This document shows positions 1 through 63,775 of a DNA stretch of 64,000 nt, one piece after another. How positions within the stretch are numbered: position 1 is the first letter of the stretch; the number at the start of each line of letters is the position of its first letter. The position numbers and the translations under genes were made by a program. This stretch comes from Obrimoposthia wandeli (lineage: Eukaryota): NCBI GenBank assembly GCA_977020255.1, contig CDROCS010001361.1:186001-250000 (forward strand). The letters run 5' to 3'. The notes below the pieces were generated by a model. It made no database searches. It was given only the letters and a program-made list of their open reading frames with translations, and was not told the origin of the DNA.

Positions 1-500
1 CAGACGCCAAAGAAAATTTTCAAAAAAGCGAAAAGATCTTAAAATAGAGACAAAGTCCTTGGGAAAATGTAACATTTACAATTTGTAAGCCAAGTGCATG
101 AACAGATTGTTCAACAGCGTATGCGACCCATTAGAATAAATCCATCAATATTTCCAGTTTGTGACATAGCATACTTCAAACTTCTTTGAGAAGTCAATAA
201 ATATTCATCGATGTTTGAGCTGTATTATTTGATGGTAATTTGTAAAAGAGTTTGTCTTCTTTGGTGAAAAAGGATAGATAATGTGCATCTCTTTGCGGTA
301 GTAAGTCATTTGAGTGCCTTGTCACCAAGACTTTATTCATTGAGCCTTGAAGTCAACAGTTCCGAAGCTTACTTTAATAAGAAACGTTCTCCGACCAGAT
401 TATTTAATTCTTCTTCATCAAAAAAAGGCTGAGATGCTGACGAGTTACCAATAAAGTATCCATCAAGCGAATTCTCAGTTGGCACCGTTTCTTCATCACT
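1..500 (-). mobile_element. Decayed DNA transposase remnant, probably CMC/Chapaev-like, intronic
   Basis: Manual minus-strand translation across stops and frameshifts gives QPFFDEEELNNLV..LLK*ASELLTSRLNE, then TYYRK.DAHYLSFFTKEDKLFY, then FIDFS.RSLKYA. These follow the order of motifs I recall from this transposase family (ELNDLVRDL.LSK..AELLASRL; WRLFIDSSKRSLK). The family name is from memory. Confidence 0.45.
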
Positions 501-823
501 GAAACATCAAGTAAATTGTGAACTGGACGCCTTGTAGTTTTCCTGTTATTATGATTTATTTCAGTTAAGATAATGAAATAATAAAAGTCATAATAGTAGA
601 TTTTTTTGATTTAAACAAAATTACAATATTTTTTTAATAATATAATATACTATAATGTACAATTTGATAGAAATAATAAAAAAAAACATTATACAAATCC
701 TAGCCCTGATGGAACACAATATTGTTATTTTGAATTTATCATATTCTAAGTTCAGCTTTAAAATCTCAAACACGAAGATGAGCGTTGGCCTGCGTAATGA
801 TTGTCGATCTTTGTGAACCTCAG

Positions 824-1020
824 GCATGCATCTACAACCATTATTCGCCGCGGGGCTTCTAGGTGATAAGGATGTCGAACTGAACCATACAGATGTTGAG
901 ATTGTCCAAGGTAACACTCGGGAAAAAGGACTGGTGTTATCAGCGCTGTGTGGATTGAGCTTCAACAGCAGCATCAGTACATTTTCACCGGGATCCGCAA
1001 CTGCATCATACATTAGCGAG
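824..1020 (+). CDS. Internal exon, N-terminal half of a discoidin-like domain
   Basis: cctcag|GC ATG CAT...AGC GAG|gtaagc; translates (C/G)MHLQPLFAAGLLGDKDVEL...EKGLVLS...SYISE. It starts in phase 1, so an upstream exon is required, and ends in phase 0, matching the next exon. Confidence 0.7.
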
Positions 1021-4000
1021 GTAAGCTTCGAATTACTTTGATCCATACCAACTAGTATGACTATATTTGTTTTCAAAAGTTTGAAAATAATTGAACTATT
1101 ATTTATTGAAATATATTGATTGAGTTTTACTAATTTATTTAACATCAAATTTTCAAATTGGGATTTAGCCGCGATACAGCCTATTTCTTACTAACATTAG
1201 CAATCATTGTAGACTGTTTATCTTCATTTTAAAAGTAATGAACGAAATTTAATTGAATGTAGTATATTGTCATTCTAATGGTACAATAGCATTTTCGATT
1301 TATACTTCGTTATTCGAAAAGATAATTAAGACATATTATTCATTTTCGTCTTTATGATGATTCGCAACATTGCATTGATTTGTTTCTATTGACTATGAAA
1401 TCAGATTTCTGATATAGAAAATCTTATTAATGAAATATTTATATGGATGAAATCAAGACAATTGAAGTTGACTGATAGTAAAACTGAGGCAATATTATCT
1501 GAATCTAAGTGTAATAGAAATCGTATTAAAATAAAAGAAGTTTCGTACTTGTCGGGGAAAATATTATTTATTTAAAAATAAAATAAAGAACAACAGATGC
1601 GTTCTTGATAAAAATATTACATTGAACTGCCAAAGTAATAAGCTGATAAGAACAGTCACACCGAAAAAACCTTACTACTGAGATAACTACAATGATAACG
1701 CAAAAATTGATTTTCAAAATTCTTTACGGTTTAATATTCCAGTATATAAATTAAATCGCTTGCAAACAATTTAAACATAGTCATCAGATTTAGATTCAAA
1801 TTAAAGAAAGTGCTGTTACAAGTAAACATTTAATTAATATCCGTTGGTTTCCCATCAATACCATAATTAGATTCAAGTTCCTTCTTATTATCGAAAATGT
1901 ATTCCTGTGTATCTTAAGAGCATCGGCGATGACTGCAGATTGGTTAAGAAGTTATCAAATAATAAAACAGAGTGCTGGATTATTTGACAATTTATGCTCG
2001 GAATTCTTACAACAATTTACAAATGATTATAGGGAACTGTAACAATGTTGAAAAATTCAAGGAGTAGCTGATGACTTCAGAAAACATTACGAATAATAAT
2101 GGAAAACAGGAAGTGTTTTTCAGTAATAAATCTTATATTAAATATATTATTGCTATCATTATTGTTATAACAAACACTAACATTTCTTTGCCAAACCACA
2201 GGTCAATATATACGGCGATGGTGTGGAGTTTCTGGAAGAATACAGCTTACTGACTGACGACGGTCGAATTCTGAAAAGTAAAGCGGATGTTCAGCAATGT
2301 TCTGGCCGAAAAAGAATTATTGTCGATTCATTTGCATCTCTGATTCATTTGGTCTTTAGAACTTCTGTTTGTACTCATGGTGTCAAGAGAAATACCATAT
2401 TTGTGGAGATCCTGGGATGGTTTACTACCAAAAAAGGCAAGATTTGTTTTCCCTTTTATTTCTTATTGATTTATTTTATGAAAGTGTTCATTTATAGTTT
2501 GTAATACACAACGTTCAAAATGATATATAAATCTAGAAGTAACTAAGATTGTATCGTATTGTTTTTGTTTGTTTAAAGTAATTGCAGCATAAACATTGTT
2601 TACTTAAATATTTGGTTAAATTAAGGAAATTACAAAAATACTCTGTCTGGTGGGTATAGAAAACGAACAGGAAAACAGAAAGAGTTTTCACGAAGAGAGA
2701 AAAGCCTATTTATAATATCAAGATTGAACATTTGAAGGTGAAAGCGAGGAGATTGAAGAAAAACAACTTTCTCTTTATAGTAAGGAACTGTCATAATCTA
2801 TATCTCACATGGCAGCTAAGAGTATTTTCGAAAGTTCGAGTGTTATAGAGTTAGTATAACAGCAGTTGAAAACAGTAGCAGCTGATAGTTATTAAGAAAC
2901 TCGTCTGGAATTTGCAAAATATCCTTTGAAGCCTTTAGCGCTGTGCCGGGAGTGGGACATAAGTTTTTAAAATGTTTTGTAGAGATCATGTTCTCTATGA
3001 CCTTCGCCAACAACATTGTTATTTCACAATTTTCAACCCAAAATAGTAACACACAGTTAAGAGCAGTAAATAATTAAGGGAAATTAATTTTCTACAGAAT
3101 CTAACACTTACTTTTATAATTGATGGTCTTTTAATAATAAATAATCAAACCAAATTTGACATTTTTACACGCTGTTATGATTTTATTTTATGTACTAAAA
3201 TAGAATTTTCAGAATAAGTTTTTGTTCAAATATATATGTTACGGACTGTAAGTACCTAACGCGTTTGATGCTTTTAGTACTTTAAAAATATAGTCGTCTT
3301 TTAAAATAGTTTATTAAAACAAAGTTGGTTCGAAAAGGAAACGCTCCTCTCCCATAATTTTATAACAATATAATCTATATAATCTTTGTATAAAATTTTT
3401 TAAATTTCAGATTGTAACTCTAGAACGGGAACAGTATACCGATTTGAAGAACAGTTGAAAATTGGCAATAACAAAATGTCACTGCAATTAAAAACCGACG
3501 GTGAATATATAAGAAATGTGTATATGATAGCACAAAAAAATTTATTAATTGATCAATTAAGAATTGAATTCATTCCCGCTGAAGATGGAGATCGAAGAAA
3601 ATATAAAATAGAACATTTCAAAATAACCAAGTACAAAATATCTTTCACAAACAAAACGAAACTCCTATGCGTTCCTGTACCTAATATTTCTAAACTACAA
3701 TTAGAAATAGTGACAAAAACAACAGAAAGCGTACAAATAAACATAGAAACAGGTTGCACAAAAGTTGGAAAAACTACAGAAAAATTTCAAACAACAAAAT
3801 CACCAATCAAAAACAAAACTTCAACAACTACAAAAAAGTCGATTTCAACAAAAGAAATAAACGTAAAAACAACCACCAAAAAGTCCAAGATAATTATCAA
3901 AAGCTCAACGAAAAAAAGAATAACCAAAACTATAAAAAGCACAAAGACACCAAAAACATCAACAACAAAAAAGCCAGTTAAGGCCTGCAAACCGAAGAAA

Positions 4001-7000
4001 ATCTTGCAAGACAAGAGACTGACTGACATCAAAGTGACACCAAAGGTAACGAAAGAAGACGAAGATAAATTGAGACCAAATCCCAAAAAACCGAAAGACG
4101 GTTTGGTCTTGACTACAGGAAACAAGAAGATCGTGGTAAGAATCAGTGAGGGCAAGAAGCCGAAGAAGCCAAACAGAATCACGAAAACTGGCCTGAAATT
4201 CCCAGACGAAACTCCAGACAAGAAGGTGGGCGACATCTTTGAGTCAGTAACGGTGACGTTTGTGAAAGAAGTCAAACCGAAGAAGGGCAGCAACGAACCG
4301 AGAAGAGTAAAACAGATTATCACAGTACCGAAAACGAGCACTCTAAAGAAACTGAATAATGTCGTCAGCGACAAAAATACACCACGAAATGTGAAGAAGA
4401 TCATTATTGAGTTGGTGGTGAAGAAGCCAGTAAAGACTACATTGAACGTGAAAGGTTGCGTGAAGAGACGCATTGTGACGACAAGCACAACGAAGAAGAG
4501 CAAACCCGAAACGACAACAACAACAAAGAAGCCGCCCAAGGCCTGCAAACCGAAGAAAATCTTGCAAGACAAGAGACTGACTGATATCAAAGTGACACCA
4601 AAGGTAACGAAAGAAGATGAAGATAAATTGAGACCAAATCCCAAAAAGCCGAAAGACGGTTTGGTTTTGACTACAGGAACCAAGAAGATCGTGGTAAGAA
4701 TCAGTGAGGGCAAGAAACCGACGAAGCCGAACAAAATCACAACAACTGGAGTAAAATTGCCAGAAGAAAATCCAGATAAGAAGGTGAGTGACATATTTGA
4801 ATCAGTAACGGTGACGTTTGTGAAAGAGATTAAGCCAAAGAAGGGCAGCAACGTTCCGAGAAAAGTAAGAGAGACTATTAAAGTTCCGAAGGAGATCACT
4901 GTAGAAGAATTGGAAAATGTTGTCAGTGACAGAAAGAAACCACGAAATGTGAAGAAGATCATTATTGAGTTGGTGGTGAAGAAGCCAGTAAAGACTACAT
5001 TGAACGTGAAAGGTTGCGTGAAGAGACGCATTGTGACGACAAGCACAACGAAAAAGAGCAAACCCGAAACGACAACAACAACAAAGAAGCCGGTCAAGGC
5101 CTGCACAATCAAGAAAATATTGCAAGACAAGAGACTGACTGACATCAAAGTGACACCAAAGGTAACGAAAGAAGACGAAGATAAATTGAGACCAAATCCC
5201 AAAAAACCGAAAGACGGTTTGGTCTTGACTACAGGAAACAAGAAGATCGTGGTAAGAATCAGTGAGGGCAAGAAGCCGAAGAAGCCAAACAGAATCACGA
5301 AAACTGGCCTGAAATTCCCAGACGAAACTCCAGACAAGAAGGTGGGCGACATCTTTGAGTCAGTAACGGTGACGTTTGTGAAAGAAGTCAAACCGAAGAA
5401 GGGCAGCAACGAACCGAGAAGAGTAAAACAGATTATCACAGTACCGAAAACGAGCACTCTAAAGAAACTGAATAATGTCGTCAGCGACAAAAATACACCA
5501 CGAAATGTGAAGAAGATCATTATTGAGTTGGTGGTGAAGAAGCCAGTAAAGACTACATTGAACGTGAAAGGTTGCGTGAAGAGACGCATTGTGACGACAA
5601 GCACAACGAAGAAGAGCAAACCCGAAACGACAACAACAACAAAGAAGCCGGTCAAGGCCTGCACAATCAAGAAAATCTTGCAAGACAAGAGACTGACTGA
5701 CATCAAAGTGACACCAAAGGTAACGAAAGAAGACGAAGATAAATTGAGACCAAATCCCAAAAAGCCGAAAGACGGTTTGGTTTTGACTACAGGAACCAAG
5801 AAGATCGTGGTAAGAATCAGTGAGGGCAAGAAACCGACGAAGCCGAACAAAATCACGAAAACTGGCCTGAAATTCCCAGACGAAACGCCAGACAAGAAGG
5901 TGGGCGACATCTTTGAGTCAGTAACGGTGACGTTTGTGAAAGAAGTCAAACCGAAGAAGGGCAGCAACGAACCGAGAAGAGTAAAACAGATTATCACAGT
6001 ACCGAAAACGAGCACTCTAAAGAAACTGAATAATGTCGTCAGCGACAGAAAGAAACCACGAAATGTGAAGAAGATCATTATTGAGTTGGTGGTGAAGAAG
6101 CCAGTAAAGACTACATTGAACGTGAAAGGTTGCGTGAAGAGACGCATTGTGACGACAAGCACAACGAAGAAGAGCAAACCCGAAACGACAACAACAACAA
6201 AGAAGCCGCCCAAGGCCTGCAAACCGAAGAAAATCTTGCAAGACAAGAGACTGACTGATATCAAAGTGACACCAAAGGTAACGAAAGAAGATGAAGATAA
6301 ATTGAGACCAAATCCCAAAAAGCCGAAAGACGGTTTGGTTTTGACTACAGGAACCAAGAAGATCGTGGTAAGAATCAGTGAGGGCAAGAAACCGACGAAG
6401 CCGAACAAAATCACAACAACTGGAGTAAAATTGCCAGAAGAAAATCCAGATAAGAAGGTGAGTGACATATTTGAATCAGTAACGGTGACGTTTGTGAAAG
6501 AGATTAAGCCAAAGAAGGGCAGCAACGTTCCGAGAAAAGTAAGAGAGACTATTAAAGTTCCGAAGGAGATCACTGTAGAAGAATTGGAAAATGTTGTCAG
6601 TGACAGAAAGAAACCACGAAATGTGAAGAAGATCATTATTGAGTTGGTGGTGAAGAAGCCAGTAAAGACTACATTGAACGTGAAAGGTTGCGTGAAGAGA
6701 CGCATTGTGACGACAAGCACAACGAAGAAGAGCAAACCCGAAACGACAACAACAACAAAGAAGCCGGTCAAGGCCTGCACAATCAAGAAAATCTTGCAAG
6801 ACAAGAGACTGACTGACATCAAAGTGACACCAAAGGTAACGAAAGAAGACGAAGATAAATTGAGACCAAATCCCAAAAAACCGAAAGACGGTTTGGTCTT
6901 GACTACAGGAAACAAGAAGATCGTGGTAAGAATCAGTGAGGGCAAGAAACCGACGAAGCCGAACAAAATCACGAAAACTGGCCTGAAATTCCCAGACGAA

Positions 7001-10000
7001 ACGCCAGACAAGAAGGTGGGCGACATCTTTGAGTCAGTAACGGTGACGTTTGTGAAAGAAGTCAAACCGAAGAAGGGCAGCAACGAACCGAGAAGAGTAA
7101 AACAGATTATCACAGTACCGAAAACGAGCACTCTAAAGAAACTGAATAATGTCGTCAGCGACAAAAATACACCACGAAATGTGAAGAAGATCATTATTGA
7201 GTTGGTGGTGAAGAAGCCAGTAAAGACTACATTGAACGTGAAAGGTTGCGTGAAGAGACGCATTGTGACGACAAGCACAACGAAGAAGAGCAAACCCGAA
7301 ACGACAACAACAACAAAGAAGCCGCCCAAGGCCTGCAAACCGAAGAAAATCTTGCAAGACAAGAGACTGACTGATATCAAAGTGACACCAAAGGTAACGA
7401 AAGAAGATGAAGATAAATTGAGACCAAATCCCAAAAAGCCGAAAGACGGTTTGGTTTTGACTACAGGAACCAAGAAGATCGTGGTAAGAATCAGTGAGGG
7501 CAAGAAACCGACGAAGCCGAACAAAATCACAACAACTGGAGTAAAATTGCCAGAAGAAAATCCAGATAAGAAGGTGAGTGACATATTTGAATCAGTAACG
7601 GTGACGTTTGTGAAAGAGATTAAGCCAAAGAAGGGCAGCAACGTTCCGAGAAAAGTAAGAGAGACTATTAAAGTTCCGAAGGAGATCACTGTAGAAGAAT
7701 TGGAAAATGTTGTCAGTGACAGAAAGAAACCACGAAATGTGAAGAAGATCATTATTGAGTTGGTGGTGAAGAAGCCAGTAAAGACTACATTGAACGTGAA
7801 AGGTTGCGTGAAGAGACGCATTGTGACGACAAGCACAACGAAAAAGAGCAAACCCGAAACGACAACAACAACAAAGAAGCCGGTCAAGGCCTGCACAATC
7901 AAGAAAATATTGCAAGACAAGAGACTGACTGACATCAAAGTGACACCAAAGGTAACGAAAGAAGACGAAGATAAATTGAGACCAAATCCCAAAAAACCGA
8001 AAGACGGTTTGGTCTTGACTACAGGAAACAAGAAGATCGTGGTAAGAATCAGTGAGGGCAAGAAGCCGAAGAAGCCAAACAGAATCACGAAAACTGGCCT
8101 GAAATTCCCAGACGAAACTCCAGACAAGAAGGTGGGCGACATCTTTGAGTCAGTAACGGTGACGTTTGTGAAAGAAGTCAAACCGAAGAAGGGCAGCAAC
8201 GAACCGAGAAGAGTAAAACAGATTATCACAGTACCGAAAACGAGCACTCTAAAGAAACTGAATAATGTCGTCAGCGACAAAAATACACCACGAAATGTGA
8301 AGAAGATCATTATTGAGTTGGTGGTGAAGAAGCCAGTAAAGACTACATTGAACGTGAAAGGTTGCGTGAAGAGACGCATTGTGACGACAAGCACAACGAA
8401 GAAGAGCAAACCCGAAACGACAACAACAACAAAGAAGCCGCCCAAGGCCTGCAAACCGAAGAAAATCTTGCAAGACAAGAGACTGACTGATATCAAAGTG
8501 ACACCAAAGGTAACGAAAGAAGATGAAGATAAATTGAGACCAAATCCCAAAAAGCCGAAAGACGGTTTGGTTTTGACTACAGGAACCAAGAAGATCGTGG
8601 TAAGAATCAGTGAGGGCAAGAAACCGACGAAGCCGAACAAAATCACAACAACTGGAGTAAAATTGCCAGAAGAAAATCCAGATAAGAAGGTGAGTGACAT
8701 ATTTGAATCAGTAACGGTGACGTTTGTGAAAGAGATTAAGCCAAAGAAGGGCAGCAACGTTCCGAGAAAAGTAAGAGAGACTATTAAAGTTCCGAAGGAG
8801 ATCACTGTAGAAGAATTGGAAAATGTTGTCAGTGACAGAAAGAAACCACGAAATGTGAAGAAGATCATTATTGAGTTGGTGGTGAAGAAGCCAGTAAAGA
8901 CTACATTGAACGTGAAAGGTTGCGTGAAGAGACGCATTGTGACGACAAGCACAACGAAAAAGAGCAAACCCGAAACGACAACAACAACAAAGAAGCCGGT
9001 CAAGGCCTGCACAATCAAGAAAATATTGCAAGACAAGAGACTGACTGACATCAAAGTGACACCAAAGGTAACGAAAGAAGACGAAGATAAATTGAGACCA
9101 AATCCCAAAAAACCGAAAGACGGTTTGGTTTTGACTACAGGAAACAAGAAGATCGTGGTAAGAATCAGTGAGGGCAAGAAGCCGAAGAAGCCAAACAGAA
9201 TCACGAAAACTGGCCTGAAATTCCCAGACGAAACGCCAGACAAGAAGGTGGGCGACATCTTTGAGTCAGTAACGGTGACGTTTGTGAAAGAAGTCAAACC
9301 GAAGAAGGGCAGCAACGAACCGAGAAGAGTAAAACAGATTATCACAGTACCGAAAACGAGCACTCTAAAGAAACTGAATAATGTCGTCAGCGACAAAAAT
9401 ACACCACGAAATGTGAAGAAGATCATTATTGAGTTGGTGGTGAAGAAGCCAGTAAAGACTACATTGAACGTGAAAGGTTGCGTGAAGAGACGCATTGTGA
9501 CGACAAGCACAACGAAGAAGAGCAAACCCGAAACGACAACAACAACAAAGAAACCGGTCAAGGCCTGCAAACCGAAGAAAATCTTGCAAGACAAGAGACT
9601 GACTGATATCAAAGTGACACCAAAGGTAACGAAAGAAGATGAAGATAAATTGAGACCAAATCCCAAAAAGCCGAAAGACGGTTTGGTTTTGACTACAGGA
9701 ACCAAGAAGATCGTGGTAAGAATCAGTGAGGGCAAGAAACCGACGAAGCCGAACAGAATCACGAGAACTGGCCTGAAATTCCCAGACGAAACGCCAGACA
9801 AGAAGGTGGGCGACATCTTTGAGTCAGTAACGGTGACGTTTGTGAAAGAAGTCAAACCGAAGAAGGGCAGCAACGAACCGAGAAGAGTAAAACAGATTAT
9901 CACAGTACCGAAAACGAGCACTCTAAAGAAACTGAATAATGTCGTCAGCGACAGCAAGACACCACGAAATGTGAAGAAGATCATTATTGAGTTGGTGGTG

Positions 10001-13000
10001 AAGAAGCCAGTAAAGACTACATTGAACGTGAAAGGTTGCGTGAAGAGACGCATTGTGACGACAAGCACAACGAAGAAGAGCAAACCCGAAACGACAACAA
10101 CAACAAAGAAGCCGGTCAAGGCCTGCACAATCAAGAAAATCTTGCAAGACAAGAGACTGACTGACATCAAAGTGACACCAAAGGTAACGAAAGAAGACGA
10201 AGATAAATTGAGACCAAATCCCAAAAAGCCGAAAGACGGTTTGGTTTTGACTACAGGAACCAAGAAGATCGTGGTAAGAATCAGTGAGGGCAAGAAACCG
10301 ACGAAGCCGAACAGAATCACGAGAACTGGCCTGAAATTCCCAGACGAAACGCCAGACAAGAAGGTGGGCGACATCTTTGAGTCAGTAACGGTGACGTTTG
10401 TGAAAGAAGTCAAACCGAAGAAGGGCAGCAACGAACCGAGAAGAGTAAAACAGATTATCACAGTACCGAAAACGAGCACTCTAAAGAAACTGAATAATGT
10501 CGTCAGCGACAGCAAGACACCACGAAATGTGAAGAAGATCATTATTGAGTTGGTGGTGAAGAAGCCAGTAAAGACTACATTGAACGTGAAAGGTTGCGTG
10601 AAGAGACGCATTGTGACGACAAGCACAACGAAGAAGAGCAAACCCGAAACGACAACAACAACAAAGAAACCGGTCAAGGCCTGCAAACCGAAGAAAATCT
10701 TGCAAGACAAGAGACTGACTGATATCAAAGTGACACCAAAGGTAACGAAAGAAGATGAAGATAAATTGAGACCAAATCCCAAAAAGCCGAAAGACGGTTT
10801 GGTTTTGACTACAGGAACCAAGAAGATCGTGGTAAGAATCAGTGAGGGCAAGAAACCGACGAAGCCGAACAGAATCACAGCAACTGGAGTAAAATTGCCA
10901 GAAGAAAATCCAGATAAGAAGGTGAGTGACATATTTGAATCAGTAACGGTGACGTTTGTGAAAGAGATTAAGCCAAAGAAGGGCAGCAACGTTCCGAGAA
11001 AAGTAAGAGAGACTATTAAAGTTCCGAAAGAGATCACTGTAGAAGAATTGGAAAATGTTGTCAGTGGCAGAAAGAAACCACGAAATGTGAAGAAGATCAT
11101 TATTGAGTTGGTGGTGAAGAAGCCAGTAAAGACTACATTGAACGTGAAAGGTTGCGTGAAGAGACGCATTGTGACGACAAGCACAACGAAGAAGAGCAAA
11201 CCCGAAACGACAACAACAACAAAGAAGCCGGTCAAGGCCTGCACAATCAAGAAAATCTTGCAAGACAAGAGACTGACTGACATCAAAGTGACACCAAAGG
11301 TAACGAAAGAAGACGAAGATAAATTGAGACCAAATCCCAAAAAGCCGAAAGACGGTTTGGTCTTGACTACAGGAAACAAGAAGATCGTGGTAAGAATCAG
11401 TGAGGGCAAGAAGCCGAAGAAGCCAAACAGAATCACGAAAACTGGCCTGAAATTCCCAGACGAAACGCCAGACAAGAAGGTGGGCGACATCTTTGAGTCA
11501 GTAACGGTGACGTTTGTGAAAGAAGTCAAACCGAAGAAGGGCAGCAACGAACCGAGAAGAGTAAAACAGATTATCACAGTACCGAAAACGAGCACTCTAA
11601 AGAAACTGAATAATGTCGTCAGCGACAAAAATACACCACGAAATGTGAAGAAGATCATTATTGAGTTGGTGGTGAAGAAGCCAGTAAAGACTACATTGAA
11701 CGTGAAAGGTTGCGTGAAGAGACGCATTGTGACGACAAGCACAACGAAGAAGAGCAAACCCGAAACGACAACAACAACAAAGAAACCGGTCAAGGCCTGC
11801 AAACCGAAGAAAATCTTGCAAGACAAGAGACTGACTGATATCAAAGTGACACCAAAGGTAACGAAAGAAGATGAAGATAAATTGAGACCAAATCCCAAAA
11901 AGCCGAAAGACGGTTTGGTTTTGACTACAGGAACCAAGAAGATCGTGGTAAGAATCAGTGAGGGCAAGAAACCGACGAAGCCGAACAAAATCACAACAAC
12001 TGGAGTAAAATTGCCAGAAGAAAATCCAGATAAGAAGGTGAGTGACATATTTGAATCAGTAACGGTGACGTTTGTGAAAGAGATTAAGCCAAAGAAGGGC
12101 AGCAACGTTCCGAGAAAAGTAAGAGAGACTATTAAAGTTCCGAAGGAGATCACTGTAGAAGAATTGGAAAATGTTGTCAGTGACAGAAAGAAACCACGAA
12201 ATGTGAAGAAGATCATTATTGAGTTGGTGGTGAAGAAGCCAGTAAAGACTACATTGAACGTGAAAGGTTGCGTGAAGAGACGCATTGTGACGACAAGCAC
12301 AACGAAAAAAGAGCAAACCCGAAACGACAACAACAACAAAGAAGCCGGTCAAGGCCTGCACAATCAAGAAAATATTGCAAGACAAGAGACTGACTGACAT
12401 CAAAGTGACACCAAAGGTAACGAAAGAAGACGAAGATAAATTGAGACCAAATCCCAAAAATCCAAAAGACGGTTTGGTTTTGACTACAGGAACCAAGAAG
12501 ATCGTGGTAAGAATCAGTGAGGGCAAGAAACCGACGAAGCCGAACAGAATCACGAGAACTGGCCTGAAATTCCCAGACGAAACGCCAGACAAGAAGGTGG
12601 GCGACATCTTTGAGTCAGTAACGGTGACGTTTGTGAAAGAAGTCAAACCGAAGAAGGGCAGCAACGAACCGAGAAGAGTAAAACAGATTATCACAGTACC
12701 GAAAACGAGCACTCTAAAGAAACTGAATAATGTCGTCAGCGACAAAAATACACCACGAAATGTGAAGAAGATCATTATTGAGTTGGTGGTGAAGAAGCCA
12801 GTAAAGACTACATTGAACGTGAAAGGTTGCGTGAAGAGACGCATTGTGACGACAAGCACAACGAAGAAGAGCAAACCCGAAACGACAACAACAACAAAGA
12901 AACCGGTCAAGGCCTGCAAACCGAAGAAAATCTTGCAAGACAAGAGACTGACTGATATCAAAGTGACACCAAAGGTAACGAAAGAAGATGAAGATAAATT

Positions 13001-40000: not shown

Positions 40001-43000
40001 CATTGTCGAAAGCGAAACAAAAGAAAAGAAACCTGACGGAAGCAAGAAAACCAAAACTACTACCATTGTGGTACCGAAGACGGCAACAGTGAAGGATGTG
40101 AAAAATGTACTGAAATCGGAGATTCCAAAGGTAACGAAGATCACGCTTGAGACAAAGGTGAAGAAGGATGTGAAGGTGACTCTGAATGTGAAGGGTTGTG
40201 TGAAAAACAAGACACAAACAACAACTCCAGCCGTAAAAGAACAAGCGTTTGTTTGCAAGAAACCAGTAGCACTGATCCAGAAAAAGAAGATGGTGGCTGT
40301 AAAAGCAACACCAACGTTGAAGAAGGGCGACGAAACGAAGATAAGATTTGATCCCAAAAACCGAAACAGGCCGCACAGCTGGGTGCTGGAAAACAAGTAA
40401 TTGAAGTTACACTACCCGAAGGTCAGAAGATTGCTGTAGTGAAATTCGGACTGGTATTTGGCGAGGAGAAGGATACAACAGATGCAAAGAAGGTTGTTAA
40501 GAATGTCGAATTGGTTATGACAAGAATCAGATCATCGTATGGTAAATTGGTTGGCAGAGACAAGAAGGTCAAAGTGCAGAAATTGAAAACAGTGAAAGAC
40601 CTAAAGAACCTGATGGCAATTAGACAGGTGACTAATGTGAACAAAGTTGTACTGAAGTTCGAAACCGTCAAGGCTGTGAAGGTGGCTGTTAAATTCTCTG
40701 GGTGTAAACAACCAAAGAGAGTGACAACAACAACCAAATCAACGAAGAAATGCACCGGAAAGAAGATCATCGAAGACAAAAAGTTGACAACAATCAAAGG
40801 TACGAGTGGCCTTAAGAAGGGCGACGAAAAGAAACTGCGACCAGACCCAAGTAAGCCAAAGGAGGGCTTGGTCTTGAAGCCAGGAGTGAAGAAGATTGAA
40901 GTGATAGTTAGCAAAGGAACACCGACTGAAAAAGTAGAAAAGGTGACTGCTGTAGGAGTGAAGCTTGTAGACAAAAAGCCAACAGACAAGGTTAGCGAAG
41001 TATTTGATAGCATTAAATTCATTGTCGAAAGCGAAACAAAAGAAAAGAAACCTGACGGAAGCAAGAAAACCAAAACTACTACCATTGTGGTACCGAAGAC
41101 GGCAACAGTGAAGGATGTGAAAAATGTACTGAAATCGGAGATTCCAAAGGTAACGAAGATCACGCTTGAGACAAAGGTGAAGAAGGATGTGAAGGTGACT
41201 CTGAATGTGAAGGGTTGTGTGAAAAACAAGACACAAACAACAACTCCAGCCGTAAAAGAACAAGCGTTTGTTTGCAAGAAACCAGTAGCACTGATCCAGA
41301 AAAAGAAGATGGTGGCTGTAAAAGCAACACCAACGTTGAAGAAGGGCGACGAAACGAAGATAAGATTTGATCCCAAAAAACCGAAACAGGCCGCACAGCT
41401 GGGTGCTGGAAAACAAGTAATTGAAGTTACACTACCCGAAGGTCAGAAGATTGCTGTAGTGAAATTCGGACTGGTATTTGGCGAGGAGAAGGATACAACA
41501 GATGCAAAGAAGGTTGTTAAGAATGTCGAATTGGTTATGACAAGAATCAGATCATCGTATGGCAAATTGGTTGGCAGAGACAAGAAGGTCAAAGTGCAGA
41601 AATTGAAAACAGTGAAAGACCTAAAGAACCTGATGGCAATTAGACAGGTGACTAATGTGAACAAAGTTGTACTGAAGTTCGAAACCGTCAAGGCTGTGAA
41701 GGTGGCTGTTAAATTCTCTGGGTGTAAACAACCAAAGAGAGTGACAACAACAACCAAATCAACGAAGAAATGCACCGGAAAGAAGATCATCGAAGACAAA
41801 AAGTTGACAACAATCAAAGGTACGAGTGGCCTTAAGAAGGGCGACGAAAAGAAACTGCGACCAGACCCAAGTAAGCCAAAGGAGGGCTTGGTCTTGAAGC
41901 CCGGAGTGAAGAAGATTGAAGTGATAGTTAGCAAAGGAACACCGACTGAAAAAGTAGAAAAGGTGACTGCTGTAGGAGTGAAGCTTGTAGACAAAAAGCC
42001 AACAGACAAGGTTAGCGAAGTATTTGATAGCATTAAATTCATTGTCGAAAGCGAAACAAAAGAAAAGAAACCTGACGGAAGCAAGAAAACCAAAACTACT
42101 ACCATTGTGGTACCGAAGACGGCAACAGTGAAGGATGTGAAAAATGTACTGAAATCGGAGATTCCAAAGGTAACGAAGATCACGCTTGAGACAAAGGTGA
42201 AGAAGGATGTGAAGGTGACTCTGAATGTGAAGGGTTGTGTGAAAAACAAGACACAAACAACAACTCCAGCCGTAAAAGAACAAGCGTTTGTTTGCAAGAA
42301 ACCAGTAGCACTGATCCAGAAAAAGAAGATGGTGGCTGTAAAAGCAACACCAACGTTGAAGAAGGGCGACGAAACGAAGATAAGATTTGATCCCAAAAAT
42401 CCGAAACAGGCCGCACAGCTGGGTGCTGGAAAACAAGTAATTGAAGTCACACTACCCGAAGGTCAGAAGATTGCTGTAGTGAAATTCGGACTGGTATTTG
42501 GCGAGGAGAAGGATACAACAGATGCAAAGAAGGTTGTTAAGAATGTCGAATTGGTTATGACAAGAATCAGATCATCGTATGGTAAATTGGTTGGCAGAGA
42601 CAAGAAGGTCAAAGTGCAGAAATTGAAAACAGTGAAAGACCTAAAGAACCTGATGGCAATTAGACAGGTGACTAATGTGAACAAAGTTGTACTGAAGTTC
42701 GAAACCGTCAAGGCTGTGAAGGTGGCTGTTAAATTCTCTGGGTGTAAACAACCAAAGAGAGTGACAACAACAACCAAATCAACGAAGAAATGCACCGGAA
42801 AGAAGATCATCGAAGACAAAAAGTTGACAACAATCAAAGGTACGAGTGGCCTTAAGAAGGGCGACGAAAAGAAACTGCGACCAGACCCAAGTAAGCCAAA
42901 GGAGGGCTTGGTCTTGAAGCCCGGAGTGAAGAAGATTGAAGTGATAGTTAGCAAAGGAACACCGACTGAAAAAGTAGAAAAGGTGACTGCTGTAGGAGTG

Positions 43001-46000
43001 AAGCTTGTAGACAAAAAGCCAACAGACAAGGTTAGCGAAGTATTTGATAGCATTAAATTCATTGTCGAAAGCGAAACAAAAGAAAAGAAACCTGACGGAA
43101 GCAAGAAAACCAAAACTACTACCATTGTGGTACCGAAGACGGCAACAGTGAAGGATGTGAAAAATGTACTGAAATCGGAGATTCCAAAGGTAACGAAGAT
43201 CACGCTTGAGACAAAGGTGAAGAAGGATGTGAAGGTGACTCTGAATGTGAAGGGTTGTGTGAAAAACAAGACACAAACAACAACTCCAGCCGTAAAAGAA
43301 CAAGCGTTTGTTTGCAAGAAACCAGTAGCACTGATCCAGAAAAAGAAGATGGTGGCTGTAAAAGCAACACCAACGTTGAAGAAGGGCGACGAAACGAAGA
43401 TAAGATTTGATCCCAAAAATCCGAAACAGGCCGCACAGCTGGGTGCTGGAAAACAAGTAATTGAAGTCACACTACCCGAAGGTCAGAAGATTGCTGTAGT
43501 GAAATTCGGACTGGTATTTGGCGAGGAGAAGGATACAACAGATGCAAAGAAGGTTGTTAAGAATGTCGAATTGGTTATGACAAGAATCAGATCATCGTAT
43601 GGCAAATTGGTTGGCAGAGACAAGAAGGTCAAAGTGCAGAAATTGAAAACAGTGAAAGACCTAAAGAACCTGATGGCAATTAGACAGGTGACTAATGTGA
43701 ACAAAGTTGTACTGAAGTTCGAAACCGTCAAGGCTGTGAAGGTGGCTGTTAAATTCTCTGGGTGTAAACAACCAAAGAGAGTGACAACAACAACCAAATC
43801 AACGAAGAAATGCACCGGAAAGAAGATCATCGAAGACAAAAAGTTGACAACAATCAAAGGTACGAGTGGCCTTAAGAAGGGCGACGAAAAGAAACTGCGA
43901 CCAGACCCAAGTAAGCCAAAGGAGGGCTTGGTCTTGAAGCCCGGTGAAGAAGATTGAAGTGATAGTTAGCAAAGGAACACCGACTGAAAAAGTAGAAAAG
44001 GTGACTGCTGTAGGAGTGAAGCTTGTAGACAAAAAGCCAACAGACAAGGTTAGCGAAGTATTTGATAGCATTAAATTCATTGTCGAAAGCGAAACAAAAG
44101 AAAAGAAACCTGACGGAAGCAAGAAAACCAAAACTACTACCATTGTGGTACCGAAGACGGCAACAGTGAAGGATGTGAAAAATGTACTGAAATCGGAGAT
44201 TCCAAAGGTAACGAAGATCACGCTTGAGACAAAGGTGAAGAAGGATGTGAAGGTGACTCTGAATGTGAAGGGTTGTGTGAAAAACAAGACACAAACAACA
44301 ACTCCAGCCGTAAAAGAACAAGCGTTTGTTTGCAAGAAACCAGTAGCACTGATCCAGAAAAAGAAGATGGTGGCTGTAAAAGCAACACCAACGTTGAAGA
44401 AGGGCGACGAAACGAAGATAAGATTTGATCCCAAAAAACCGAAACAGGCCGCACAGCTGGGTGCTGGAAAACAAATAATTGAAGTTACACTACCCGAAGG
44501 TCAGAAGATTGCTGTAGTGAAATTCGGACTGGTATTTGGCGAGGAGAAGGATACAACAGATGCAAAGAAGGTTGTTAAGAATGTCGAATTGGTTATGACA
44601 AGAATCAGATCATCGTATGGCAAATTGGTTGGCAGAGACAAGAAGGTCAAAGTGCAGAAATTGAAAACAGTGAAAGACCTAAAGAACCTGATGGCAATTA
44701 GACAGGTGTCTAATGTGAACAAAGTTGTACTGAGGTTCGAAACCGTCAAGGCTGTGAAGGTGGCTGTTAAATTCTCTGGGTGTAAACAACCAAAGAGAGT
44801 GACAACAACAACCAAATCAACGAAGAAATGCACCGGAAAGAAGATCATCGAAGACAAAAAGTTGACAACAATCAAAGGTACGAGTGGCCTTAAGAAGGGC
44901 GACGAAAAGAAACTGCGACCAGACCCAAGTAAGCCAAAGGAGGGCTTGGTCTTGAAGCCCGGAGTGAAGAAGATTGAAGTGATAGTTAGCAAAAGAACAC
45001 CGACTGAAAAAGTAGAAAAGGTGACTGCTGTAGGAGTGAAGCTTGTAGACAAAAAGCCAACAGACAAGGTTAGCGAAGTATTTGATAGCATTAAATTCAT
45101 TGTCGAAAGCGAAACAAAAGAAAAGAAACCTGACGGAAGCAAGAAAACCAAAACTACTACCATTGTGGTACCGAAGACGGCAACAGTGAAGGATGTGAAA
45201 AATGTACTGAAATCGGAGATTCCAAAGGTAACGAAGATCACGCTTGAGACAAAGGTGAAGAAGGATGTGAAGGTGACTCTGAATGTGAAGGGTTGTGTGA
45301 AAAACAAGACACAAACAACAACTCCAGCCGTAAAAGAACAAGCGTTTGTTTGCAAGAAACCAGTAGCACTGATCCAGAAAAAGAAGATGGTGGCTGTAAA
45401 AGCAACACCAACGTTGAAGAAGGGCGACGAAACGAAGATAAGATTTGATCCCAAAAAACCGAAACAGGCCGCACAGCTGGGTGCTGGAAAACAAGTAATT
45501 GAAGTTACACTACCCGAAGGTCAGAAGATTGCTGTAGTGAAATTCGGATTGGTATTTGGCGAGGAGAAGGATACAACAGATGCAAAGAAGGTTGTTAAGA
45601 ATGTCGAATTGGTTATGACAAGAATCAGATCATCGTATGGCAAATTGGTTGGCAGAGACAAGAAGGTCAAAGTGCAGAAATTGAAAACAGTGAAAGACCT
45701 AAAGAACCTGATGGCAATTAGACAGGTGACTAATGTGAACAAAGTTGTACTGAAGTTCGAAACCGTCAAGGCTGTGAAGGTGGCTGTTAAATTCTCTGGG
45801 TGTAAACAACCAAAGAGAGTGACAACAACAACCAAATCAACGAAGAAATGCACCGGAAAGAAGATCATCGAAGACAAAAGTTGACAACAATCAAAGGTAC
45901 GAGTGGCCTTAAGAAGGGCGACGAAAAGAAACTGCGACCAGACCCAAGTAAGCCAAAGGAGGGCTTGGTCTTGAAGCCCGGAGTGAAGAAGATTGAAGTG

Positions 46001-49000
46001 ATAGTTAGCAAAAGAACACCGACTGAAAAAGTAGAAAAGGTGACTGCTGTAGGAGTGAAGCTTGTAGACAAAAAGCCAACAGACAAGGTTAGCGAAGTAT
46101 TTGATAGCATTAAATTCATTGTCGAAAGCGAAACAAAAGAAAAGAAACCTGACGGAAGCAAGAAAACCAAAACTACTACCATTGTGGTACCGAAGACGGC
46201 AACAGTGAAGGATGTGAAAATGTACTGAAATCGGAGATTCCAAAGGTAACGAAGATCACGCTTGAGACAAAGGTGAAGAAGGATGTGAAGGTGACTCTGA
46301 ATGTGAAGGGTTGTGTGAAAAACAAGACACAAACAACAACTCCAGCCGTAAAAGAACAAGCGTTTGTTTGCAAGAAACCAGTAGCACTGATCCAGAAAAA
46401 AGAAGATGGTGGCTGTAAAAGCAACACCAACGTTGAAGAAGGGCGACGAAACGAAGATAAGATTTGATCCCAAAAATCCGAAACAGGCCGCACAGCTGGG
46501 TGCTGGAAAACAAGTAATTGAAGTTACACTACCCGAAGGTCAGAAGATTGCTGTAGTGAAATTCGGATTGGTATTTGGCGAGGAGAAGGATACAACAGAT
46601 GCAAAGAAGGTTGTTAAGAATGTCGAATTGGTTATGACAAGAATCAGATCATCGTATGGCAAATTGGTTGGCAGAGACAAGAAGGTCAAAGTGCAGAAAT
46701 TGAAAACAGTGAAAGACCTAAAGAACCTGATGGCAATTAGACAGGTGACTAATGTGAACAAAGTTGTACTGAAGTTCGAAACCGTCAAGGCTGTGAAGGT
46801 GGCTGTTAAATTCTCTGGGTGTAAACAACCAAAGAGAGTGACAACAACAACCAAATCAACGAAGAAATGCACCGGAAAGAAGATCATCGAAGACAAAAAG
46901 TTGACAACAATCAAAGGTACGAGTGGCCTTAAGAAGGGCGACGAAAAGAAACTGCGACCAGACCCAAGTAAGCCAAAGGAGGGCTTGGTCTTGAAGCCCG
47001 GAGTGAAGAAGATTGAAGTGATAGTTAGCAAAAGAACACCGACTGAAAAAGTAGAAAAGGTGACTGCTGTAGGAGTGAAGCTTGTAGACAAAAAGCCAAC
47101 AGACAAGGTTAGCGAAGTATTTGATAGCATTAAATTCATTGTCGAAAGCGAAACAAAAGAAAAGAAACCTGACGGAAGCAAGAAAACCAAAACTACTACC
47201 ATTGTGGTACCGAAGACGGCAACAGTGAAGGATGTGAAAAATGTACTGAAATCGGAGATTCCAAAGGTAACGAAGATCACGCTTGAGACAAAGGTGAAGA
47301 AGGATGTGAAGGTGACTCTGAATGTGAAGGGTTGTGTGAAAAACAAGACACAAACAACAACTCCAGCCGTAAAAGAACAAGCGTTTGTTTGCAAGAAACC
47401 AGTAGCACTGATCCAGAAAAAGAAGATGGTGGCTGTAAAAGCAACACCAACGTTGAAGAAGGGCGACGAAACGAAGATAAGATTTGATCCCAAAAATCCG
47501 AAACAGGCCGCACAGCTGGGTGCTGGAAAACAAGTAATTGAAGTTACACTACCCGAAGGTCAGAAGATTGCTGTAGTGAAATTCGGATTGGTATTTGGCG
47601 AGGAGAAGGATACAACAGATGCAAAGAAGGTTGTTAAGAATGTCGAATTGGTTATGACAAGAATCAGATCATCGTATGGCAAATTGGTTGGCAGAGACAA
47701 GAAGGTCAAAGTGCAGAAATTGAAAACAGTGAAAGACCTAAAGAACCTGATGGCAATTAGACAGGTGACTAATGTGAACAAAGTTGTACTGAAGTTCGAA
47801 ACCGTCAAGGCTGTGAAGGTGGCTGTTAAATTCTCTGGGTGTAAACAACCAAAGAGAGTGACAACAACAACCAAATCAACGAAGAAATGCACCGGAAAGA
47901 AGATCATCGAAGACAAAAAGTTGACAACAATCAAAGGTACGAGTGGCCTTAAGAAGGGCGACGAAAAGAAACTGCGACCAGACCCAAGTAAGCCAAAGGA
48001 GGGCTTGGTCTTGAAGCCCGGAGTGAAGAAGATTGAAGTGATAGTTAGCAAAAGAACACCGACTGAAAAAGTAGAAAAGGTGACTGCTGTAGGAGTGAAG
48101 CTTGTAGACAAAAAGCCAACAGACAAGGTTAGCGAAGTATTTGATAGCATTAAATTCATTGTCGAAAGCGAAACAAAAGAAAAGAAACCTGACGGAAGCA
48201 AGAAAACCAAAACTACTACCATTGTGGTACCGAAGACGGCAACAGTGAAGGATGTGAAAAATGTACTGAAATCGGAGATTCCAAAGGTAACGAAGATCAC
48301 GCTTGAGACAAAGGTGAAGAAGGATGTGAAGGTGACTCTGAATGTGAAGGGTTGTGTGAAAAACAAGACACAAACAACAACTCCAGCCGTAAAAGAACAA
48401 GCGTTTGTTTGCAAGAAACCAGTAGCACTGATCCAGAAAAAGAAGATGGTGGCTGTAAAAGCAACACCAACGTTGAAGAAGGGCGACGAAACGAAGATAA
48501 GATTTGATCCCAAAAATCCGAAACAGGCCGCACAGCTGGGTGCTGGAAAACAAGTAATTGAAGTTACACTACCCGAAGGTCAGAAGATTGCTGTAGTGAA
48601 ATTCGGATTGGTATTTGGCGAGGAGAAGGATACAACAGATGCAAAGAAGGTTGTTAAGAATGTCGAATTGGTTATGACAAGAATCAGATCATCGTATGGC
48701 AAATTGGTTGGCAGAGACAAGAAGGTCAAAGTGCAGAAATTGAAAACAGTGAAAGACCTAAAGAACCTGATGGCAATTAGACAGGTGTCTAATGTGAACA
48801 AAGTTGTACTGAGGTTCGAAACCGTCAAGGCTGTGAAAGTTTCTCTCACATTGAAGGCATGTATACAATTGGATATCGCTGGTACTACTACTGTTAATGT
48901 TTTGGATCAGACATTCAAATGTAATCTACCGACTTCTCTATTCGACTCAGTTTCCAGTGCAGTTATATCGAAAGATCCTGCAATGTCACGCCCGAATTTG

Positions 49001-52000
49001 AATCGCTTGAAGTATTCATTGAGCAATCGCCTTGTTGGAGCTGATATAATCCGTGGCCGTCAAGAGATCAACATTACTCTTGGTTTTGGTATTGTTGCCA
49101 CTCTCACAGATGTCGGCCTGATCTTTCCTCGGTTGCCTATCGGTGGGAACTCTTCCACTGTGCTCAGCGATCTGTCTGTCACCATCACTCGCCTGCGTCA
49201 ACGCTACGGCCAGCTACAGCCTAGTTATATCAGACTTACGCCCAGCCTGCCTGTCAGTCTCCAGACTCTCAGAACTCTTCTCATTTCACAGTACACAAGT
49301 GTCAATGAGATCAGCATCTCCTTCATCAATCTGAGATCATCCAATCTCCTTGTCAACATATCTGGTTGCTACTTCAATCAGAAGCTTACAACGACCACTC
49401 AGGCACCAGTAGCATGCGTGCATCTTGGTAAATCGTACCCAACCGGCAAAATATTCCCCAGTTCAGTAGAGTGCATGTACTCGTGAGTTGAATTTACGTT
49501 TTAATTTTTTAACTGTTTACTTTGAATTTACACGTTTTTTAACAATAAAAAATCGAAGAGTAAATTTCGAACAAATGCTATGAAATTGGTTATTTAAATT
49601 AGACTTTAATGTTTGAAAATGCTATGAGTGATCAGAAACATTCTGTTTCTTAAAGAGACTAAAATATTGGAAATATTTAACTAGCTTAATTTCCGATTTC
49701 AAAACTGTATGTTATGTTTAAGACATAGCTTCTTCTCCAAGAAGATTAAATATTTGTTAAGAAACATCAAATCCCGAATTGATTTTAAATCGATTATTTA
49801 TTGAATTGTTACCAATTTATCCACTGTATGGATTTTTAAAATAATATATATATTCTTAAATCTAGATATCGTGTAAAGCCTGAAGTATAAGGCCTGTTTT
49901 TTAAACTGTTTTATTGAAATAGTAAACAGCAAATTGACCAAAATTTAGGCCATGACTTTTAATAAAAGTATAATATTTATGTTAACAATATTTAAATAAA
50001 ATTTTCCTAAAAATTATTAGTATTTGGATTTTATAGCTATAATGTAATTAATATAAATGGACTGCATTTGCTACCTTTGTTTAATGTATCATAATGCAAA
50101 TTTGGTATACGTTTAGAAAAATTAATAAAAACTGAATAAAAATTTTAAATAAAATTTTTGTTTTTGATGTCTTAAAGTATTTTTTAAATGATTTTCATTT
50201 ATAGGAATTTATATTTTTATTCATTATACTTAAGATATTTTAAATTTTTACTATAAAATATTCAAAACATTTTAATATTTTATAATTTTGATTTACCTGA
50301 AGAATTTATATTTGTATTTTTAAATGTTTGCAATATATATTTTAAATGTTTTATTTAAATTTCATCTACATTATTCAGAAATTAGTTTACTTAATATAAT
50401 GTAAATTTTATATATTTTCTTAAATTTTGTTATTTATAGATTTGCCGAATTATTTTTGTTGGACATATTTGTGTTCAGAAAGGTTAATGGAAATTTGTCT
50501 AAACCAACTATTTTATATAATTTAAGGAAATATAATTATATCTTCTGGTGCAAATTCCTTACTACCTACAACTTTTCGCAATATTAGTGTAACTTTATTA
50601 AAAAATTTCTGTTATATATATATTTAAATGTTAGCAATATAAATGTTAAATTTTATTTACATTATTTAGAAATCAGTTTACTTAATATAATGTTTTAATT
50701 TGTATATATTCTTATTTATACATGTGATAATTTTGTTATATTTCATTTTTCTTATCAGAAAAGACAATTGAAATTTGTCCAAATCACCTGTTGTGTAATA
50801 ATTTTGTAAGTCTTTGTACTTTTCATTTCGGTAAATATAATGTCAGTTTTATGTCAGATATTTTTTTCTTACTTACATTAAATTAAATATGAAATATTAT
50901 GGTTATTCAGTTGATTTTATTAAATGAATGCATAGCGACATTTATTTTCTATATATATTAAATTTTTACGACTAATCTCTGATTTTATATATTTTCGAAA
51001 CACTGTTTAACTATTGAAAACATTAAGAGTGTCAGAAAGGATAGTTTAAATCACAGTGGTTTATGGTGTTATAACATTTCGAATAGAAAATGTCAACTGT
51101 AACACAAAATAAATATTTAAGACATTTTGGATTTATTCAGATTAAAGAAATATATAAATTATTTTCAAAAAAATATTGTATTTATAAATGAGTCTGATAT
51201 TCAATAGTTCTATGGTAATGTCTAATCGAAATGTGAAATATTGACATAGCAATTAAGTAAGTGACCTGGTGCAGATAGTTTTAGTCTTTTCTGCTGTGCA
51301 GAGTGTGCACAAATGGCCGTATCGTACCCATTGTGAAGTGCCGGGAAACGTGGTCGGCATGGTCGGATTGCTCGAAGCCTTGTGGGGCCGGAAGAAGCAG
51401 TCGGCGCAAGATATGCGTACTCAATCCGGTAATAAAGTCCATCAAAGCGAGTGTGCTGCTAAAGAGCATCAAAGAGTCCTGCATGTACCGTATCGAGTCG
51501 CAACCATGCTTCAAGAAACCGTGTCTAGGTAATGTGGTCTTTTGGTTGACGGTTTTGAGGAACTTTGGGAAAAGCCATTTTTATTGAGGATTTGTAAAAT
51601 TTTAACTGTTTATAAATGTCATATACGACTTGTTTCCTTGCGAGCATGTCCCTTTGCTGGAGCCATATCATGTGTAATTGGGCCTGTGCTTTTGCAGAGG
51701 CATGCAAAATGAGCCAGTGGTCTTCGTGGAGCGAATGCAGAAATCAGACGTGCCGCAGCGAATACCAAACACGGTACCGAGTGGTCGTCAGCACAAACAA
51801 GAAGGTGCAGTGCCAAGAACCTCTCGTACAATCGAAGAGATGTGTCAAACCTAAATGTAAGTTAATAAGTGATCTTGCTGATTTTTCTTTTTGTAAAAGA
51901 AACTTATTGAAAACTGAACGTTTTTTTTAAGGTAGGGATTTAAATAACTAAAGGGACTATGAAGATTTTTTTGATCCCAGAAGTGCAGTGATCGATATTT

Positions 52001-62919: not shown

Positions 62920-63091
62920 TTGCAGCTCAATCTCACAAGTTTGCCTCGCTGCTCCGTTCAAGTTGCAGCTCAATCTCACAAGTTTGCCTCGCTGCTCCGT
63001 TCAAGTTGCAGCTCAATCTCACAAGTTTGCCCCGCTGCTCCGTTCAAGTTGCAGCTCAATCTCACAAGTTTGCCCCACTGCTCAGTTCTAA
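62920..63091 (+). repeat. Minisatellite, 4 x 43 bp
   Basis: Unit TTGCAGCTCAATCTCACAAGTTTGCCTCGCTGCTCCGTTCAAG, degrading towards the 3' end. Confidence 0.9.
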
Positions 63092-63244
63092 GTTGCAGTG
63101 CTCAGTACCACAGGCAATTCCACTGCTCAGTCACAGCTTGCCGTCCAGCAGTTTCTCATCTCACCCATTTCCGTGTCGAGAGAACTATACCAGGAGACGA
63201 GGACTTATTGATAACAGGAGTAACTAAAGGTATAAATACCCGCA

Positions 63245-63775
63245 GAATTGGTAACATTTGATAACGAATATTTGAATCATAAATTAGAAATTGAATTGGT
63301 AACATTTGATAACGAATATTTGAATCATAAATTAGAAATTGAATTGGTAACATTTTGATAACGAATATTTGAATCATAAATTAGAAATTGAATTGGTAAC
63401 ATTTGATAACGAATATTTGAATCATAAATTAGAAATTGAATTGGTAACATTTTGATAACGAATATTTGAATCATAAATTAAAAATTGAATTGGTAACATT
63501 TGATAACGAATATTTGAATCATAAATTAGAAATTGAATTGGTAACATTTTGATAACGAATATTTGAATCATAAATTAGAAATTGAATTGGTAACATTTGA
63601 TAACGAATATTTGAATCATAAATTAGAAATTGAATTGGTAACATTTGATAACGAATATTTGAATCATAAATTAGAAATTGAATTGGTAACATTTTGATAA
63701 CATATATTTTTGAATCGTAAATTAGAAATTGAATTGGTAACATTTTGATAACATATATTTTGAAATCGTAAATTT
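63245..63775 (+). repeat. Minisatellite, 11 x 48/49 bp
   Basis: Unit GAATTGGTAACATTT(T)GATAACGAATATTTGAATCATAAATTAGAAATT; periods 48,48,49,48,49,48,49,48,48,51; the last two copies are diverged. Confidence 0.95.

Follow-up and report, generated by a model that had tools for sequence, protein, structure and literature searches.

A giant lysine-rich repeat exon of Obrimoposthia wandeli with predicted discoidin-like beta-sandwich modules

We analysed a 64,000-nucleotide stretch of the genome of Obrimoposthia wandeli (assembly GCA_977020255.1, contig CDROCS010001361.1, positions 186,001 to 250,000 of the forward strand; hereafter the window), much of which is filled by tandem repeats encoding lysine-rich units bracketed by cysteines. 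With good though incomplete confidence, we read this stretch as the giant exon at the centre of a gene that encodes a very large secreted protein, with about 15,350 amino acids (aa) in the exon alone. The repeated modules are, with the same confidence, predicted to be eight-stranded beta-sandwiches of the galactose-binding-domain-like fold, nearest to CBM32 and F5/8 type C (discoidin, FA58C) domains. The modules would represent an extreme new variant of a known fold, in what is probably a known kind of protein. It is the fold-level reading that the models support; membership of the FA58C sequence family, or descent from it, is not shown by them.

Repeat units of the giant exon and their predicted fold

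The window is AT-rich eukaryotic DNA in which the non-coding parts have about 30% G+C and an A-rich block of 42-45% G+C extends from about 4 to 49 kb. The + strand of this block is made up of abutting or overlapping stop-free segments, the longest of 3,532 codons. The exons and repeat units at the centre of the analysis are the following.

826..1020, + strand: upstream exon, first half of unit U1; AG acceptor before 826, GTAAGC donor after 1020
2202..2445, + strand: upstream exon, second half of U1; ends ...IFVEILGWFTTKK; probable GC donor (AAG/GCAAGA), in-frame join to 3411
3411..49480 (approximate), + strand: giant repeat exon of about 46 kb and about 15,350 codons; acceptor at 3409-3410, GTGAGT donor at its end
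3413..3757, + strand: U2, a 115-aa Cys...ETGC unit, from the translation
3956..28448, + strand: A array, 44 units of 558 nucleotides (nt) in the blastn census; subtypes A1 (e.g. 4460-5017) and A2 (e.g. 5018-5575)
28449..29498, + strand: degenerate units D1 (28449-29006) and D2 (29007-29498), with fewer Lys, more Phe/Ile and one extra Cys each
29499..48862, + strand: B array, 19 B1 units (513 nt) alternating with 19 B2 units (507 nt) in the blastn census; domains of 156 and 151 aa
48920..49369, + strand: relic unit, 150 aa, 1.3% Lys, Cys at residues 1 and 150, ends LVNISGC

The first codon of the exon at 826..1020 is split with an exon that lies outside the window.

Units were counted by blastn with four reference units and by splitting the translation after each GC dipeptide. 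The A unit of 186 aa (558 nt) consists of a 28-aa Thr/Lys linker and a 158-aa Cys-to-Cys domain; the B1 and B2 units measure 171 and 169 aa. In every unit type the core is 150-158 aa long, with Cys as its first residue and a strand plus (G)C as its end; a Thr/Lys-rich linker of 15-28 aa, such as VKRRIVTTSTTKKSKPETTTTTKKPVKA, comes after it. An earlier sequence-only reading of this DNA had described the same plan, and its opening Cys, Thr-rich linkers and quoted endings were all recovered by + strand translation: TTLNVKGC in A and B1, VAVKFSGC in B2, SLNIKGC in the degenerate unit at 28449, INIETGC in U2 (3413-3757) and LVNISGC in the relic. The exceptions are YIKRC in the unit at 29034-29492 and LTLKAC in the last B2. 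The spliced upstream unit, U1, likewise has the sequence reported for it when exons 826-1020 and 2202-2445 are joined. The count of about 87 units also holds, as 44 A, 19 B1, 19 B2, two degenerate, one relic and two upstream units.

Copies of one unit type are 97-100% identical, and the repeat pattern is therefore not due to chance. In the blastn census A1 and A2 were about 90% identical to each other, and copies within a subtype 96-100%. The unit types themselves were connected by a local profile search calibrated on 1000 shuffles: A with B1 at an E-value of 1.7e-33, A with B2 at 2e-12 and B2 with the relic at 4e-7 (7e-11 in the reverse direction). Only three columns, those of the opening Cys, a single Gly and the closing Cys, are invariant among unit types that are as little as 15% identical. 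That all of the roughly 87 units belong to one family was borne out for 85 of them and not for U1 and U2, which scored no better than shuffles against the unit profile (U1 at -2.4 bits, U2 not above its own shuffles). Both U1 exons lacked a Pfam match beyond sub-threshold noise, and the best protein-language-model look-alike of U2 (GH123_N, 0.75 at most) was not usable. Judged by sequence, 85 units are demonstrably one family, with U1 and U2 as doubtful members.

Two observations concern the A array itself. Between 21197 and 28448, 13 successive A2-type units are equally identical (97.3-97.7%) to the reference A2, with A1 and A2 interspersed further upstream; this pattern suggests that one variant expanded locally not long ago. 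In the deepest of the DNA runs, contigs made of one A unit (3950-4600) reached a depth of 4,600-5,000 versus about 50 in the unique flanks, which corresponds to about 90 copies versus the 44-45 A units in the window. The excess could stem from collapse of the array, from another array elsewhere or from haplotype effects on flank depth.

Structures were predicted with AlphaFold2 for two unit types, A1 and the relic. The model of the A unit at 4544-5017, built on an alignment of eight unit types, reached a mean predicted local distance difference test score (pLDDT) of 85.5 and a predicted template modelling (pTM) score of 0.81, with no residue below 50, and is an eight-stranded beta-sandwich. 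The relic, only about 15% identical to A1, yielded a model (pLDDT 77.1, pTM 0.76) with the strand order of the A unit, and the two models have their best Protein Data Bank (PDB) neighbour in common. In two structure searches run without the Foldseek prefilter, the best 50 chains were all of the galactose-binding-domain-like fold (SCOP b.18, Pfam clan CL0202) and included CBM32, discoidin I, neuropilin b1/b2, fucolectin, DOC/APC10, PITH and IFT25. Foldseek against the PDB listed mostly CBM32, F5/8 type C, discoidin (CASPR2, DDR2), DOC/APC10, PITH and IFT25. A shape search of the ESM Atlas returned template modelling (TM) scores of 0.59-0.64, including F5_F8_type_C clusters with PF00754 in every member, and the matches among Swiss-Prot models (NR2C2AP, APC10, PITH, DCBLD1) were all of the same fold. 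As modelled, the units have the distorted jelly-roll of the PF00754 family, a beta-sandwich of about 150 residues and eight strands. The confident models of the A and relic units, together with their CBM32, F5/8 type C and discoidin neighbours, uphold the folded, discoidin-like beta-sandwich that had been proposed from the letters alone. Two outcomes had been named as contrary to that proposal, disordered units and an unrelated fold devoid of terminal Cys pairing; neither was seen.

The ends of the model are informative about the terminal cysteines. Residues 1..158 of the A model align to residues 274..424 (b1) and 430..583 (b2) of neuropilin-1, whose FA58C domains (UniProt O14786) we take to be bounded by Cys275-Cys424 and Cys431-Cys583. 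Since the ends of the model align to the ends of b1 and b2, the terminal cysteines of the unit would sit where the FA58C disulfide sits. The first and the last Cys are invariant in all aligned unit types, as expected of a metazoan FA58C domain, and the two are likely to be joined by a disulfide of the kind that closes discoidin domains in metazoans.

The intact units (13,258 aa in total) contain 21.9% Lys, 12.9% Val, 12.8% Thr, 6.7% Pro, 1.2% Cys, 0% Trp and 0% His. Each module has about 35 Lys; the domains are 21-25% Lys with a net charge of +19 to +25 (+25 to +33 per unit), and we estimate that the whole chain carries a charge of roughly +2,300 or more. Of the 35 Lys of the A model, 15 lie in strands and the others in Lys/Pro-rich loops, and strands hold 14 of the 21 Val and 9 of the 12 Ile, a predicted placement that fits a hydrophobic core under a lysine-covered surface. 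Thr plus Ser make up 9-17% of the domain cores versus 22-40% of the linkers; thus the linkers are the mucin-like part. The cores do not resemble mucin-type PTS sequence, which is dominated by Pro, Thr and Ser and has no stable fold; only the 15-28 aa linkers do, and these may well carry mucin-type O-glycans.

Comparison with flatworm adhesion protein 2 and proposed role

By analogy with published descriptions, we somewhat favour the view that the gene corresponds to flatworm adhesion protein 2 (ap2). Mlig-ap2 is a protein of 14,794 aa with 21 repeats of 255 aa followed by 25 repeats of 221 aa, and with thrombospondin type 1 (TSP1) and trypsin-inhibitor-like (TIL) domains at its C-terminus; it is O-glycosylated, attaches to the surface and is indispensable for adhesion (PMC6410801). 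Tmed-ap2 shows arrays of 330 and 230 aa repeats, three TSP1, one TIL and 22.5% Lys (PMC9229212), and Mile-ap2, whose gene has an exon of 15 kb or more, contains three TSP-1 and a TIL (PMC6745481, PMC9229212). Reports on Tmed-ap2 and Mile-ap2b agree on three TSP1 together with one TIL (PMC9229212, PMC6745481). As in the ap2 proteins of these three kinds, two successive arrays of long repeats are present here in a giant exon, 44 x 186 aa and then 19 x (171+169) aa. Lys is similarly abundant, at 21.9% compared with the 22.5% of Tmed-ap2, as are Thr-rich, possibly O-glycosylated segments (12.8% Thr). The C-terminal side also carries three TSP1 and one TIL, found in + strand exons downstream of the giant exon.

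51348..51425, + strand: TSP1 repeat in the first downstream exon (PF00090, E 1.8e-05; PF19035, E 5e-06)
51703..51858, + strand: complete TSP1 repeat (PF00090, E 1.3e-07; PF19028, E 2.4e-08)
53253..53408, + strand: TIL cysteine-rich domain (PF01826, E 3.1e-08)
58019..58099, + strand: third TSP1 repeat, WSEWSGWSPCS... (PF00090, E 8.5e-06)

The unit lengths set the protein apart, 186 and 171+169 aa here versus the published 255/221 and 330/230. Two points tell against the identification. The likeness to ap2 is one of published descriptions and not of aligned sequence, and the window starts inside the gene, so that its N-terminus, any signal peptide and the N-terminal region lie outside it; that is the part in which published ap2 proteins have a signal peptide and a VWD/C8/TIL/LDLa region.

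The product is predicted to resemble beads on a string, 85 or more compact modules, each about 150 aa long, being joined by Thr/Lys/Pro linkers of 15-28 aa. If the gene is indeed an ap2 counterpart, thousands of surface lysines on rigid modules would allow multivalent electrostatic adsorption to negatively charged wet surfaces. The linkers, once glycosylated, would serve as spacers, and cohesive partner proteins would be bound by the TSP1/TIL end. There is precedent for such an arrangement: sea urchin Nectin, a temporary glue with six tandem FA58C domains, and sea star Sfp1 are adhesive or cohesive secreted proteins of tandem discoidin-fold domains (PMC10057474). The six domains of Nectin are, however, canonical, Pfam-detectable and not polycationic, whereas the units described here number at least 85 and are cryptic and lysine-coated.

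A less probable but serious alternative, to which we give roughly half the weight of the ap2 assignment, is that the fold is right and the protein belongs to some other secreted material, such as mucus, the matrix of a cocoon or egg capsule, or an extracellular fibre of the SCO-spondin/hemocytin kind, and not to a substrate glue. TSP1 and TIL are generic matrix modules, and proteins of the SCO-spondin/hemocytin type also combine TSP1, TIL and discoidin-fold modules in a giant secreted chain. In these, however, canonical FA58C domains number one or two amid many modules of other kinds, and no near-identical tandem array dominates the protein. The agreement with ap2 is moreover point by point (PMC9229212, PMC6745481, PMC6410801): long repeats in two arrays, a Lys content of about 22%, Thr linkers, one giant exon and, on the C-terminal side, a TSP1 count of exactly three together with a single TIL.

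Function and structure of the ap2 repeats are both described as unknown and their primary sequence as not conserved between taxa (PMC6410801, PMC9229212, PMC6745481), and a 2025 review regards Lys/Arg-rich glue repeats of this type as amyloid-prone (PMC12472103). The flatworm ap2 literature that we examined (PMC6410801, PMC9229212, PMC6745481) does not describe a discoidin-like fold for them. We suggest, tentatively and at less than even odds, that ap2 repeats in general, which make up two-thirds or more of ap2, belong to a polycationic branch of the discoidin/CBM32 fold that lacks Trp and is an orphan in sequence. If this were true, the temporary glues of flatworms and echinoderms (Nectin) would share a folded lectin-type module, and not disordered or amyloid-prone low-complexity sequence. 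The fold assignment makes a single 150-aa module testable for its disulfide and for binding to glycans, polyanions and surfaces, and such a module could serve as a defined building block in biomimetic glues.

Descent, reading frame and order of the units

The units resemble F5/8 type C (discoidin, FA58C) and bacterial CBM32 domains (PF00754) in their jelly-roll shape of about 150 aa and in the Cys at both ends. They differ from PF00754 domains in having no detectable sequence similarity, no Trp and none of the signature motifs, in their 21-25% Lys and charge of +19 to +25 per domain, and in being present in at least 85 copies per chain, far above any described protein. We considered a reading in which the units share the galactose-binding-domain-like jelly-roll and are not of F5/8 type C descent, having come from another family or arisen independently, with the Cys pair as a parallel solution.

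The results that weigh against a discoidin assignment come from both structure and sequence. Both AlphaFold2 models were built on alignments of 8-10 paralogues, all of them from this gene. The Foldseek matches in the PDB had weak E-values (3e-4 to 3e-3) and TM scores of 0.4-0.56; taken alone, with TM below 0.6 and such E-values, they are insufficient to settle the fold. No match to PF00754 was obtained at E <= 10 when eight unit types were searched against Pfam, where all matches were sub-threshold noise, and the unit profile drew no chain at E <= 10 from the PDB sequences. Against 1.84 billion protein representatives, hmmsearch with the unit profile gave one match only, a bacterial Ig-like repeat protein over 33 residues, which was rejected as spurious; a search for homologous proteins with the relic unit plus its tail found none. 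All units aligned to the family have 0 Trp, and the spliced U1 has one. Two PROSITE-type FA58C patterns, with the conserved Trp and the ...[LM]-R-x-[GE]-x-x-G-C end, both went unmatched, the strand-plus-GC ending being all that is retained of the signature end. Finally, the language-model features of the A unit gave no usable match (0.51).

On the other side, the best 30 structural neighbours are mostly CBM32 and F5/8 type C domains, and an extracellular module of about 150 aa bracketed by a first and a last Cys is the hallmark of FA58C; the ends of the module also align to the neuropilin FA58C boundaries. The relic, in addition, has F5_F8_type_C as its best named family by language-model features (0.82, a weak match). 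Taken together, we consider a common fold of separate descent unlikely, and only a little less probable than the non-adhesive role discussed above.

The sequence-only reading had also anticipated that profile searches would miss the units because of their Lys bias. The units are indeed missed, with no match to PF00754, but the bias is not the sole cause: the relic, with 1.3% Lys, was missed too. Therefore overall divergence, and not Lys bias alone, explains why the domain goes undetected. Should the discoidin-like reading hold, this case shows how far a common extracellular fold can drift while still being predicted to fold, with no Trp, about 22% Lys and no detectable sequence signal. It also shows that profile-based annotation is blind to such units even where they form a protein of more than 15,000 aa.

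We conclude that the + frame is the real one, because the downstream + strand exons encode three TSP1 and one TIL, the units are predicted to fold, and the ratio of nonsynonymous to synonymous substitution rates (dN/dS) between unit subtypes is 0.24-0.31 in this frame (0.26 for A2 versus D1). Long minus-strand open reading frames (ORFs) at 3787-29173, rich in Phe, Leu and Val and of up to 3,514 aa, were considered as genes and rejected as an artefact of the T-poor coding strand. Reads of public runs over 600-4600, a region without a frame break, behave like genomic DNA of one sample, and among the joints listed for them none lay at the predicted introns.

The giant exon is interrupted by about 15 small indels, nearly all of them 1-nt changes in runs of A5-A6. 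If these breaks were genuine, the gene would be dead, or its product cut short at about 3,000 aa, with nothing but unequal crossing-over to keep the arrays uniform. A 1-nt deletion, GAAGAC[a]AAAAG, recurs in the B1 units at 36700 and 45876, and the break near 30596 falls at the equivalent point (IIEDKS), so that a mutation spread by unit duplication could account for them. However, single-nucleotide changes in A5-A6 runs are typical of long-read consensus error, dN/dS is well below 1, and all breaks in the 46 kb are indels, with no in-frame nonsense codon. Since no nonsense substitution is found even though about 22% of the codons are Lys codons, each one substitution away from a stop, most of the breaks are best read as long-read consensus or assembly errors and not as decay; a dead or truncated gene is improbable.

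It is very improbable that the repeats are disordered low-complexity sequence, polycationic and either mucin-like or amyloid-prone, with AlphaFold2 models made over-confident by a shallow paralogue alignment, as the 22% Lys, the Thr-rich stretches, the lack of sequence homologues in our searches and the view of flatworm glue repeats as Lys/Arg-rich and amyloid-prone in reviews (PMC12472103) might suggest, given the common topology and common best PDB neighbour of two units at only about 15% identity, the low Thr plus Ser of the cores compared with the linkers, the Val- and Ile-rich strands, the purifying selection on the units and the invariant Cys, Gly and Cys columns.

Other features of the window

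The intron between the two upstream exons contains, at 1404-2207, a high-copy repeat with a summed contig depth of 2,900-23,600 versus about 50 in the flanks, probably a fragment of a transposable element. The intron between the TIL domain and the third TSP1 repeat contains a decayed Tc1/mariner-like transposase (53690-54711, + strand) in several frameshifted ORFs, the first of which matches the HTH_23, HTH_29 and HTH_Tnp_IS630-type helix-turn-helix domains. The ORFs at 55.9-61 kb gave no match in the domain search. Near the end of the window, a short ORF at 62080-62280 matches the TBP domain (PF00352, E 1.1e-06), and two tandem-repeat arrays lie at 62920-63774, with 4.1 copies of a 43 bp unit and 10.9 copies of a 48 bp unit; these arrays have higher-order periods of 97 and 145 bp, with 95-97% matches.

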